DNA of 62,884 nt, the filler included, from Octopus bimaculoides (Eukaryota): NCBI RefSeq assembly GCF_001194135.2. It is 7 parts of 7 records of this genome, joined end to end, with 100 filler letters (N's around TTAATTAATTAA, not from the genome) between each part and the next. Parts side by side here need not be neighbours in the genome. Positions count along the whole stretch, not along the records: positions 14,333 to 31,386 come from NC_068997.1; 6 more parts are not named here. The stretch is one strand, 5' to 3'. A program made the position numbers and the translations under genes. Each line of letters begins with the position of its first letter. The stretch's first letter is position 1. The notes under the pieces were generated by a model. The model saw only the letters and a list, made by a program, of their open reading frames with translations. It was not told where the DNA came from and did not search any database. Of the stretch, positions 15,724 through 22,089 are shown in pieces.

Positions 15724-15889
15724 ATGAAGTACATATTCCTTATTGCTCTGAGTGTTGTAGCAGCCAGTGCTATCGTCTGCCCACCAGATATCTGCAAAAA
15801 CATAAACTGCCCAGCAGTAGAAAACTGTGTAGATGGTGAAATGGGAAAACAATTTTGTGGATGTTGTGATGTGTGCGTAAAATATTTGA
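15724..15889 (+). CDS. Secreted IGFBP-N/FPI-1-like plus 2x thyroglobulin type-1 protein, coding exon 1 (signal peptide and 8-Cys module)
   Basis: TTTCAG acceptor at 15706, ATG at 15724, and A|GTAAGT donor (phase 1). Translation MKYIFLIALSVVAASA-IVCPPDICKNINCPAVENCVDGEMGKQFCGCCDVCVKYL gives a hydrophobic signal peptide and a CGCCxxC motif. Confidence 0.85.
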
Positions 15890-16291
15890 GTAAGTTGGTT
15901 TCTACCCAAGAATTTATTGGAAAGAGGAAATTATGATAGACATCGCAACAGCATTCAGTAAAAATAGTATTCAGCAAAACTGAAATCAAACTTGGGATAA
16001 GCAGCTGACAATGTGATCTAATAATGTATTCACTACATGATAGTCAGGTCTGAGGATGGAATTACTCGATGTTAATCTGTTATAATGTGGTGTTCCCAAG
16101 ATGTCAGTCTGATTTGAGGATGATTGAATTAATATACGTTCTTCAAGCTCAATCAGATATATAACATGGTTTGTCAGTTTTAGATACCAGCACCACATGA
16201 TACTTTTATGGCTTTTTCTTTTATATTAACTTCATAAATTTGCCATACATACATTTCCACAGAGAACTATTTCAACGACATACGGTATGCC

Positions 16292-16330
<39 letters not shown>

Positions 16331-16842
16331 GAGTGAGAGAGCAGCGCATGCCATCAAAGTGACTCTGGGGTACAAATATACGAAGCCCAATATATCTATC
16401 ATGATTATCCATCTGATAAGAGTATACCAGGCATATGCTTCGCAACCATATATGGTGATTTCATATCATGATAAACAGTGCATGACCTTGCAGGTGGGGC
16501 CCAATTAGAATTTTCTTCAGATCGAGTAGTTCATCCCGCTCAAAAGGTCCCTGAATAAGGGTTATTTAAGGATGTTGAACGAAACAGCCATATTTCCAAG
16601 TGTGAATTATTCAAATCCGAATGAATTCCTCTCAACACATGGCTATGAAGCTCCCCTGCTCGTGAGCAGAGATGCACATGCTGTCAGCTACCAAGGGACA
16701 TGCTCAACTGAGTAAGGTCAAACAATTGACGAGCAAATTTCTGCTGTTGAGCAGAATATTTGCTGTAGCCAATCTTTTAACCCAAGACAAAATATGTACA
16801 TGATAACACTTCCAATCCTTTAAGATCAGAAGCCATGAGAGC

Positions 16843-16843
<1 letters not shown>
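16331..16843 (-). mobile_element. About 510-bp non-coding interspersed element embedded in (TAA)n
   Basis: Bounded on both sides by (TTA)n (16293-16330 and 16844-16913). Part of it recurs in the opposite orientation at about 24165-24350. Strand is inferred from the putative (AAT)n tail. Confidence 0.7.
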
Positions 16844-16913
<70 letters not shown>

Positions 16914-19770: not shown

Positions 19771-19850
19771 GTGTTACTGTGCACACACAGATGGTACTCG
19801 TATCCAAGGATTCCAATCAGCCATTCATGAAAGCCAAGGAATGAATTGCA
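19771..19850 (+). CDS. Same gene, exon encoding the C-half of thyroglobulin type-1 domain 1
   Basis: TTTCATAG acceptor (phase 2) and A|GTAAGT donor (phase 1). Translation (V)CYCAHTDGTRIQGFQSAIHESQGMNC. Phases match both neighbours. Confidence 0.92.
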
Positions 19851-21492
19851 GTAAGTTATAATTCTCTACAAGTTAAATGAATTCATCTAGCATTGCCTAC
19901 AAGGCAATCGTTTTAAAGAGATGATTCCAGTGTTAAAAACATGGCAGCTGCCTTTATTCATTAAAAATATAACAGTTACACGTAATTATATAGAGAAATT
20001 ATGAGATAGTTGCACAAAAGTACATTTACTTGGATCTGGCAGTTTTTGGTATCTCAGAAGATATTTTTATATTTTGAAGACTAGCATTAACAGAGGCAAA
20101 GAAAGGCAAGGAATTCTGAAAAATACTTTTTATCCCCTGATAAAGTCATCTGAAATATTCTAGCTATGTCCCTTCTTTATTCCTGATATTTTCCATAATG
20201 ACTAACATAAAGTTGTTTTAGTTCCTTAAAAATATAAAATCCTGTAAAAGAAACTCATTTGCAGCTATTCTTTAACAAGAACCAGTTGAACAGTGGGCTC
20301 AGTTTAATCGATTTAGCCCATGCCCCGAAATGGACCAAAATTTCAAACCAATATACTACAGGTCTAAGACGATGAGCTGTCTGAATCGTTACCACGCCGG
20401 ACAAATAAGCATCCTGTCTGTTTGTATCTTGGGGATTGTTGTGATCTTTCTAAGATGGCAGGATGTGATTTAAGAANNNNNNNNNNNNNNNNNNNNNNNN
20501 NNNNNNNNNNNNNNNNNNNNNNNNNNNNNNNNNNNNNNNNNNNNNNNNNNNNNNNNNNNNNNNNNNNNNNNNNNNNCCACCACCATCCAACAGTAGCAGT
20601 TGTAAAAGTCAAAGTCATCTGTGTGTTGGCACAAGCAGTTACCACTTGCTCAGTCCACATAGCTGTAATAGGTGCCATGACATATAGTTTGTTGCTCTAA
20701 GCTGAAGAGCGTTCTGTTGTGACCCCTTCATGAAGTTAGTAGATTTTATCATCCACTGGTGAGGAGAGTGTCAGTGGTTGAGTTGATAGTTTACTAGACC
20801 GCCAACTGAGAGATCAGGGTTCGTATTCTGTCATTGGTATGGTGGTATGATGATCCGATCCTTATTTCTGGAAACAGACACTTGTGGCAGATGGAGGTAA
20901 TAACATTTCTTTGCTGAAATCAGGGGCATCATAGTAAAATTGATGAGTGTTTCATTAAGTTGTAGTGCTGAGTGTTAGACTCTCAGTGAGTTTGAAGAAA
21001 ACAACTTCTCCTTTTTACTCCTTTTCCTATTCACCACATGAAATCTCCTGCAACACATAGCACATTGATGCACACCTCTAACTAAAACAATTGACTTCCT
21101 CTAAACAGCTCTGTGCCAACCCTTGTGGAATCTTAATTATTTTCTTAGTGACTTTTCCATTACTGTTTCAAAGATGATAGTGAAGTCCTAATGAGAAGGG
21201 ATCGTAATGAGACAGAAATATGTCCACAGTTATCTTCCCTGTTGCTGAAATAACAAAACAATATCAGACTTTGACCAATATTGTATTTATTCATCGTACA
21301 TTGAATTTCTAATTTGGCTTTTTATTTTTCACTGCTTTGAAAATGTTAACACCAACTTAACTTTTGTTTTTTCATGAGGAGGGCAGCGTCTCTGTGTTAA
21401 CTTTTGATTAAACAATTCTATTTTATATAACAATTAATGTACAAAATATACATTTACTGAGTAAATATTCCAAGAAAGGTACAACCCAAGTA

Positions 21493-21528
<36 letters not shown>

Positions 21529-21654
21529 TACGCAAAACACTTTCAATACAGTAACCATAAGAACACCACAGCAAACCACAGCACATACCCAAGGCGCACA
21601 GAGCTGCGCTCGGTAGTGAAGTGAAAGCACGTTATAAAAATATAACTACTGAAC
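21529..21654 (+). mobile_element. 5'-truncated R4/Dong-like LINE 3' end inserted in (AAT)n
   Basis: Begins with codons RKTLSIQ*, resembling the ...ILRKxL C-terminus of restriction-like-endonuclease LINEs. This is followed by about 105 bp of UTR, with (AAT)n on both sides. Confidence 0.55.
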
Positions 21655-21904
21655 AATAATAATAATAATAATGATAATAATAATACAGGAACATGTACAG
21701 AGTTATCTCCCATACTTATAATAATAAAAGTAATATCTTTTACTAGTCAATATTGATTTTTCTTCACCACGTACTTTTTCATCGGTCACCTCTTTAAATA
21801 TGTTAACACAAACGTAACTTTTGTATTTACAACAATAACCTGATGTGACAGATAAATATTGATTAATTGACTTTCTCTAAAACTTTCTTTATGGTTTCTT
21901 TCAG

Positions 21905-22089
21905 ACTGTGCCCGCCATAAGTTCGCATATGGAAAGACTGGCTTGATTGGCAAACTGTTCCGCTGTGAACCCAACGGTAATTACAACAAAATCCAATGTA
22001 CTGGAAGTGCGTGTTATTGTGTTGATGAAGTTGGCAAACAAGTTGGTAAATCAGTTCATATTACCCAGAGTGAATCAATGAACTGCTAG
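21905..22089 (+). CDS. Same gene, terminal exon encoding thyroglobulin type-1 domain 2
   Basis: TTTCTTTCAG acceptor (phase 1). Translation (N)CARHKFAYGKTGLIGKLFRCEPNGNYNKIQCTGSACYCVDEVGKQVGKSVHITQSESMNC* has six Cys in Tg1 spacing. Confidence 0.93.

Follow-up and report, generated by a model that had tools for sequence, protein, structure and literature searches.

An octopus gene joining an IB-like cysteine module to two thyroglobulin type-1 domains, with one exon most probably concealed by an assembly gap

Introduction

The thyroglobulin type-1 (Tg1) domains of p41 and saxiphilin inhibit papain-like cysteine proteases. The IGF-binding proteins (IGFBPs; IGF, insulin-like growth factor) are defined in reviews by a 12-cysteine N-domain, the motif R/KPLxxLL, an unstructured linker and a C-domain made of one six-cysteine Tg1 domain, and among invertebrates they are assigned to uro- and cephalochordates only (PMC5900387, PMC9010856). 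IGF binding is said to depend critically on the R/KPLxxLL motif, which lies between Cys11 and Cys12 (PMC9010856). The fungal protease inhibitor-1 of Antheraea mylitta (AmFPI-1) inhibits trypsin and fungal serine proteases (PMC3278429), and the Tg1 domains of equistatin, as cited in PMC7693380, inhibit papain-like proteases. Here we describe a gene of Octopus bimaculoides that combines a cysteine-rich N-terminal module (hereafter the N-module) with two Tg1 domains. It lies at 15724 to 22089 of a 62,884-nucleotide stretch of assembly GCF_001194135.2 (the window, filler included), in the piece taken from NC_068997.1. Four of its exons are readable in the window and a fifth is most probably hidden by a run of N. 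We compare the predicted product with the protease inhibitors and the IGFBPs named above.

Gene structure and a probably concealed exon

All the readable exons lie on the plus strand. Exon 1 (15724..15889) holds the start codon, the signal peptide MKYIFLIALSVVAASA and Cys1 to Cys8 of the N-module, including CGCCDVC, and it leaves in phase 1 through a GTAAGT donor. The N-terminal pattern of the product downstream of the signal peptide reads C-x4-C-x4-C-x5-C-x9-C-G-C-C-x2-C. The next readable exon (19074..19209), the second of an earlier four-exon model and the third in ours, enters in phase 1, leaves in phase 2 and carries a short linker and the start of the first Tg1 domain (Tg1-1) up to QCHGSV; its product is covered by the Pfam Thyroglobulin_1 match. 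The remainder of Tg1-1, from CYCAH to MNC, is supplied by exon 4 (19771..19850, formerly the third), and the last exon (21905..22089) encodes the entire second domain, Tg1-2 (CARHKF to SESMNC), together with the TAG stop codon. A putative polyadenylation signal, an AATAAA hexamer read from the sequence, stands 64 nt past the stop codon (22153..22158, plus strand). With AG acceptors, GTAAGT or GTAAGA donors and phases 1/2/1, the four exons sum to 567 nt, that is 188 codons and the TAG. The source annotation holds two fragments only, P0181 (70 residues, exon 1 running on into the intron) and P0182 (63 residues, identical to the last exon 21905..22089). The earlier note on this DNA had predicted a real gene for a secreted-type protein with an IB-like cysteine module followed by two Tg1 domains, given its exon coordinates, splice sites and phases, and observed that it was absent as a whole protein from the track of open reading frames (ORFs); the splice signals, the signal peptide, the Pfam matches and the fragmentary annotation agree with it on each of these points.

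In every full-length relative of this protein an additional stretch of about 34 residues, EGDRCIPEGMFGIPVASKCGLKLVCSRRSGTCI for instance, separates 'KYLK' from 'PLA', and it holds four more cysteines. The orthologues of the window locus are CAI9734988 in Octopus vulgaris and XP_029646879 in O. sinensis. The window piece aligns collinearly with the O. vulgaris locus (L001), the two being identical at about 88-91% of nucleotides, and the O. vulgaris gene has five exons, the translation of which reproduces the 221-residue protein P0001 exactly. Exon 2 of this gene (L001 12981-13082, 102 nt) has phase 1 on both sides and encodes four cysteines. Intron 1 of the window gene contains a run of 920 N (gap 1, 16914..17833). 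On its two sides the alignment to L001 stops at 12306 and resumes at 13863, so that the counterpart of the gap is L001 12307-13862. Because this interval contains the O. vulgaris exon, gap 1 replaces the stretch in which the hidden exon would lie, and the candidate exon 2, a phase 1-1 exon of about 102 nt whose 34 or so codons would include Cys9 to Cys12, is most probably located there.

The missing half-domain left no trace in the readable window by tblastn (word size 2, E<=10), and a half-domain hidden Markov model (HMM) found no match in all six frames of the readable window, the control giving E 1e-13 at L001 nt 12980. These two negatives rule out an exon overlooked in the readable intron. 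A second gap (gap 2, 20477..20576) lies in the intron between the Tg1-1 and Tg1-2 exons, where no exon is expected; its counterpart, L001 16487-16785, comprises 299 intronic bp in O. vulgaris and includes none of the P0001 exons. Both gaps are intronic and the reading frame never crosses N. A (TAT)23 microsatellite (16844-16913) runs right up to the left edge of gap 1, and a (TTA)n run stands at about L001 12950-12975, immediately before the acceptor of the O. vulgaris exon 2; microsatellites probably caused the assembly to break at this gap.

The full product would thus probably have about 222 residues in the order signal peptide, 12-cysteine N-module, Tg1, Tg1. The earlier note had taken the four exons for a protein of 188 residues; its exons are present and in frame, but that protein is most probably incomplete, one exon being placed inside gap 1. 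The four-exon model looked consistent because skipping a phase 1-1 exon preserves the frame. The same property would allow exon 2 to have been deleted or skipped in O. bimaculoides, with the 188-residue protein as the real or main product. The gap estimate of 920 N, against a longer 1556 bp in O. vulgaris, also fits such a product, as does one model of the bivalve Sinanodonta (P0011) without the same segment. However, gap lengths are estimates only, and all full-length relatives, those of octopus and amphioxus included, possess the segment, which holds four cysteines invariant across an alignment of 54 N-modules, so that its loss would strip the first eight cysteines of their domain partner. 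We regard a genuine 188-residue product as very improbable, and we retain the five-exon gene.

Exon 1 and the last exon share 84% and 93% amino acid identity with exon 1 and the corresponding part of P0001, respectively. Between the window gene and its O. vulgaris orthologue, the ratio of nonsynonymous to synonymous divergence (dN/dS) is 0.30 with dS 0.18, values that speak for an intact gene held under constraint. The nonsynonymous changes amount to 10.5 over 131 sites in the N-module half against 4 over 146 sites in Tg1-2. The motif C-G-C-C is found in the window (15853-15876) and in nearly all relatives, and reads C-S-C-C in O. vulgaris P0001 and O. sinensis P0180. The window piece that carries the gene is AT- and repeat-rich, with a GC content of 0.31-0.38. 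We also looked there for another gene or a paralogue and found none, the ORFs of at least 80 residues being exon read-throughs, N runs or low-complexity sequence.

Identity of the N-module

In the relatives the complete N-module has 12 invariant cysteines spaced C-x4-C-x4-C-x5..9-C-x9..-C-G-C-C-x2-C-x9-C-x13-C-x5-C-x6..7-C, of which the window shows the first eight. Profiles of the N-module were built from 10 and from 54 sequences, and their sole sequence match in the PDB was 3BT4, the fungal protease inhibitor-1 of A. mylitta (E 9e-4 and 1e-6). This upholds the likeness to insect fungal protease inhibitor-1 which the earlier note had remarked. IGFBP chains in the PDB were not matched at E<=10 by sequence, either with the whole protein or with the two N-module profiles. 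The Pfam IGFBP model (PF00219), by which the earlier note had proposed to recognise the domain, gave E 0.0043 and 18.1 bits on the exon-1 module alone and did not reach its cut-off of 28. The full N-module of P0001 matched neither PF00219 nor the amfpi-1 model (PF12190) at E<=1, and two gastropod-like relatives, P0005 (31.6 bits) and P0007 (25.7 bits), exceeded the PF12190 cut-off of 25.

Searched exhaustively with HMMER, 1.8 billion representatives yielded 251 proteins that match the N-module at E<=1e-3. Among the best 150 of these 251, amfpi-1 was matched by 80 (E<0.01), IGFBP by 41 and Tg1 by 34. Most of the other relatives are single-domain secreted proteins of 90-120 residues from scorpions, ticks, spiders, mites and snails, which bear names such as 'conserved secreted protein', 'U6-hypotoxin' and 'IGFBP N-terminal domain-containing'. 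Alignment of the N-module by hhalign with human IGFBP-3, -4 and -5 N-domains, whose sequences were taken from PDB alignments, gave a probability of 87% over 48 columns from Cys3 to Cys11, with a 7-residue insertion between Cys9 and Cys10; it ends before the IGFBP Cys11-Cys12 loop.

The AlphaFold2 model of the N-module alone has a predicted local distance difference test score (pLDDT) of 77, against 88.5 for the whole of P0001. The best Foldseek matches of the module were SIBD-1 (3ZXB), AmFPI-1 (3BT4) and the HtrA1 N-domain, all with TM <0.5 and E >=0.03. For 3BT4 the probability was 0.93, but with E 0.08 and TM 0.46-0.49, on a model of pLDDT 77. The IGFBPs were rejected as a near fold match, the IGFBP-4 N-domain reaching a probability of only 0.12. 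We conclude that the N-module is by its sequence an IB-superfamily module of the AmFPI-1/SIBD branch and not the N-domain of IGFBP1-6, to which, in profile comparison, it is related only distantly (the hhalign value of 87%).

The tandem Tg1 domains and a putative protease inhibitor

The two Tg1 domains are established by Pfam, as the earlier note had claimed: Thyroglobulin_1 (PF00086) matches the window product in two stretches, scoring 61.2 bits where the cut-off is 20.6 (E 6.4e-17). In the 188-residue numbering the cysteines of Tg1-1 stand at 66, 86, 97, 102, 104 and 127 and those of Tg1-2 at 129, 148, 159, 164, 166 and 188, so both are of the six-cysteine type, with QC...CYC motifs. A single residue separates the last cysteine of Tg1-1 from the first of Tg1-2, and this 'C-x-C-A-R' junction is kept throughout the family. 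The Tg1 regions of the AlphaFold2 model have pLDDT 92-96. By sequence, the closest relatives of solved structure are thyroglobulin, saxiphilin and the p41 invariant-chain fragment. Foldseek of the full model likewise finds the tandem Tg1 domains of saxiphilin and thyroglobulin (E about 3e-7), and also the p41 fragment in its cathepsin L complex (TMt 0.68, root-mean-square deviation 2.0), a structural likeness only. The IGFBP C-domains appear only at E >=0.03.

On this basis the product may be pictured as a signal peptide, a 12-cysteine N-module with six disulfides, a linker of about 10 residues and two six-cysteine Tg1 domains that would be joined rigidly through the C-x-C junction. Once secreted it could act as an extracellular tight-binding protease inhibitor. 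Its Tg1 domains would behave like those of the thyropins (p41 fragment, equistatin, saxiphilin) and block papain-like cysteine cathepsins, and its N-module may be a serine-protease-inhibitor head like AmFPI-1 or else a binding or anchoring module. That the locus is a five-exon orthologue, that it joins an AmFPI-1/SIBD-type module to two Tg1 domains and that it encodes an extracellular protease inhibitor form one joint reading, which we favour by a modest balance of likelihood. A protein that inhibits two classes of protease would be a compact disulfide-rich scaffold with a bearing on cephalopod saliva or immunity.

Several points weigh against this reading. Exon 2 is placed in gap 1 through orthology and is not directly seen, and the Sinanodonta model that is annotated without the corresponding segment makes an in-frame exon-skipped isoform formally possible. 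Octopus P0001 itself reaches neither of the Pfam models for the N-module (PF12190, PF00219), and Foldseek matches the module only weakly (best E 0.033, TM <0.5). Many Tg1 domains are not inhibitors. The loops between Cys3 and Cys4 of the two domains (HGSV and TGSA) are shorter than what we take to be the loops of p41 and equistatin. The inhibitor role is the most likely one for the family, though it is argued by analogy, and Manduca CP8, an orthologue of AmFPI-1, inhibited none of the proteases tested (PMC9273619, PMC3278429). A Tg1 protein known from an octopus salivary gland, described next, also cannot be equated with the window gene.

The proteome of the O. vulgaris posterior salivary gland includes a 227-residue Tg1 protein with a signal peptide (group 375), which shows 42.5% identity over 93% of its length to a Pomacea 'saxiphilin-like' protein and was grouped with a 75-residue O. 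bimaculoides UniProt fragment, A0A0L8GGY2 (PMC7693380). We considered this protein as the product of the window gene and rejected it, its length differing from those of P0001 (221 residues) and of P0002 (247 or 243 residues); it is possibly a third octopus member of the family. Its presence in the gland counts, by analogy, towards the inhibitor reading.

The occurrence of a related Tg1 protein in the salivary gland is also among the observations in favour of a different role, that of an immune or secretory effector: an opsonin or antimicrobial like the Galleria CP8, a toxin binder like saxiphilin, or a component of saliva or venom. GmCP8, which belongs to the AmFPI-1 family, acts as an opsonin and is bactericidal (PMC9273619). 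The single-domain relatives of the N-module in ticks, scorpions and spiders are annotated as secreted and toxin-like, and the N-module half changes faster than Tg1-2, at the counts per nonsynonymous site given above. However, the dN/dS of 0.30 and conservation in four phyla suit a housekeeping extracellular role better than a lineage-specific toxin. The toxin site of saxiphilin, moreover, is its transferrin-like core and not its Tg1 domains, as is generally known. We therefore consider an effector of this kind quite unlikely, and the protease inhibitor remains the reading that we prefer.

Distribution of the family

The close relatives found by protein search come from O. vulgaris (P0001), O. 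sinensis, Argonauta, gastropods and one bivalve. In 220-240 residues, the family architecture combines a signal peptide and the N-module with between one and four following Tg1 domains, most often two. Members were found in cephalopods (Octopus, Argonauta, Acanthosepion), gastropods (Nucella, Gigantopelta, Babylonia, Pomacea, Haliotis, Patella), a chiton (Liolophura), a bivalve (Sinanodonta), a brachiopod (Lingula), crinoids (Antedon, Anneissia) and amphioxus (Branchiostoma lanceolatum P0206, 227 residues, and a partial sequence of B. floridae). The earlier note had spoken of a mollusc protein; the same architecture exists in the brachiopod, the crinoids and amphioxus, so it is not confined to molluscs. 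No vertebrate members were found within the sensitivity of the word-seeded searches. All members are either unnamed or labelled by their Tg1 domains ('nidogen-2-like', 'thyroglobulin', 'saxiphilin-like', 'equistatin-like'), and the literature searched contained no description of a fusion of an IB-like module with Tg1 outside chordates, nor of a mollusc thyropin. Judged by its sequences, this is an old and uncharacterised family, an IB-like module with tandem Tg1 domains, that extends across four phyla. For annotation, the source assembly is left with two gene fragments and, most probably, an exon in a gap, while the orthologues are misnamed and their N-module is unrecognised.

The Haliotis RefSeq isoforms have alternative first exons and a common exon boundary between Cys8 and Cys9, and because they share this boundary the split of the N-module between these two cysteines is conserved. 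Among the Haliotis rufescens isoforms (P0195, P0043, P0199, P0200, P0210 and P0197) there are two distinct versions of the exon for the first eight cysteines, and others, named 'equistatin-like' or 'EpCAM-like', are without half or all of the N-module, which suggests that the use of the N-module is modular and promoter-dependent in this species. O. vulgaris has a paralogue, P0002/P0183 (247 and 243 residues), about 91 kb from the orthologue and on the opposite strand. On OX597830.1 the paralogue lies at about 15.79-15.81 Mb (L002) and the orthologue at about 15.90-15.91 Mb (L001); the paralogue model has a long 5' extension and its gene spans 22.6 kb.

Relationship to the IGFBPs

Like IGFBP1-6, the proteins of the octopus-type family are secreted and have a 12-cysteine N-domain with a GCGCC-type motif followed by a six-cysteine Tg1 domain, and with weak E-values Foldseek matches the chains of IGFBP-3, IGFBP-1 and IGFBP-6. 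Unlike them, the family has no R/KPLxxLL motif, and between Cys11 and Cys12 it has a loop of 6-7 residues (SRRSGT, for instance), where IGFBP-3/4/5 have 19. The spacing from Cys9 to Cys10 is 13 residues against 6 in the IGFBPs, there is no L-domain, only 4-10 residues separating Cys12 from the first cysteine of Tg1-1, and there are two Tg1 domains in place of one. The N-module is also interrupted by an intron between Cys8 and Cys9, whereas the IGFBP N-domains are encoded by one exon. The true IGFBP architecture entertained in the earlier note was thus not recovered, given the absence of the motif and of the L-domain and the presence of two Tg1 domains, and the predicted window protein is not a member of the IGFBP1-6 family.

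The evidence from amphioxus bears on the same question. PMC9010856 reports the amphioxus IGFBP as canonical, with SPFRELL at the position of the motif. The B. lanceolatum family member P0206 does not contain the SPFRELL sequence. The octopus-type family and a canonical IGFBP hence coexist in amphioxus, and because the family member stands there beside the reported canonical protein the two are distinct lineages.

These observations also limit the idea that the octopus protein binds an insulin-like peptide as an analogue or relative of the IGFBPs, with the IB-like module and Tg1-1 clamping an octopus insulin-like peptide and regulating its availability. The order of an IB-like module and then Tg1 is that of the IGFBPs, the CGCC motif and the 12 cysteines are conserved in the family, and the hhalign probability of 87% and the 41 of the best 150 (of 251) N-module relatives that match the Pfam IGFBP model point the same way. 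With E 0.01, Foldseek also places 157 columns of the full model on the IGFBP-3 chain of the IGF1/ALS complex (7WRQ_B), and it finds IGFBP C-domains too, and binding of insulin-like peptides has been reported for some invertebrate IB-domain proteins (PMC7866140). Nevertheless, the Cys11-Cys12 loop, in which the IGFBPs carry R/KPLxxLL (PMC9010856), is short as described above, no IGFBP chain of the PDB is reached by sequence at E<=10, the L-domain is absent and in amphioxus the two lineages are separate. A peptide-binding role appears to us rather unlikely, and the preferred function is still that of a protease inhibitor.

A further scenario concerns origins. The family might be a pre-chordate sister or ancestor of the IGFBPs and might already bind insulin-like peptides; the fusion of an IB-like module with Tg1 would then have been present in the bilaterian ancestor, and the chordate IGFBPs would have arisen from it as one Tg1 domain was lost, the linker was inserted and the Cys11-Cys12 loop grew into the IGF-binding site. 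Taken as a whole, this scenario is speculative and we hold it to be improbable. If true, it would overturn the published view that IGFBP-type genes are confined to chordates. An IB-like plus Tg1 architecture that co-occurs with a canonical IGFBP in amphioxus is a concrete sister-group candidate for studies of IGFBP origins, and if the IB-like and Tg1 domains were joined independently, the two families would be a clear case of convergent domain pairing.

Repeats and rearrangements around the locus

In the intron between the two Tg1 domains, about 1 kb of the window (20798-21817) has no O. vulgaris counterpart, the alignment passing from L001 17007 to 17009. This segment holds two (TAA)/(AAT)n microsatellites and is probably a lineage-specific insertion or a transposon remnant. 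A repeat of about 400 bp occurs once in the window piece (29492-29872) and at least three times in L001 (10209-10617, 17747-18161 and 24299-24672) at 78-84% identity. One of the O. vulgaris copies lies just after exon 1 and none is present at that position in the window; because this copy is found only in O. vulgaris, the repeat is taken to be like a short interspersed element (SINE) with species-specific insertions. Further short interspersed repeats lie at 22701-23053, 24181-24350 and 16656-16777. A third gap (29919-30661, 743 N) lies downstream of the gene, and its flanks match L001 in opposite orientations, forward up to 26174 and then reversed at 26871-26609, so that this site may have undergone a local inversion, or may contain an inverted repeat or a misjoin.

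Comparison with other known systems

The N-module resembles AmFPI-1/CP8 (PF12190, 3BT4) and SIBD-1 (3ZXB) as a secreted 12-cysteine module of about 75 residues with a C-x-CC-x2-C core, and its spacing Cys9-x13-Cys10-x5-Cys11 is identical to that of AmFPI-1. Those proteins are single-domain, with precursors of about 90-120 residues, unlike the octopus module, which is fused to two Tg1 domains. Within the AmFPI-1/CP8 family, inhibition is established for AmFPI-1 only and is absent in the Manduca CP8 (PMC9273619, PMC3278429).

With the thyropins (MEROPS I31: equistatin, p41, the Tg1 pair of saxiphilin and the spider and tick TT1LP) the octopus protein shares tandem six-cysteine Tg1 domains in a small secreted protein. 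It differs from known thyropins in carrying an IB-like N-module, in the single residue that separates its Tg1 domains (C-x-C) and in having CYC in place of CWC.

IGFBP7/IGFBP-rP1 and the single-IB proteins of crustaceans and ticks are, like the octopus protein, secreted and headed by an IB-type module (PMC7866140, PMC3060141). After the IB domain, however, the invertebrate IGFBP-related proteins bear a Kazal and an Ig domain or nothing, whereas in the octopus protein the IB-like module is followed by a tandem of Tg1 domains.

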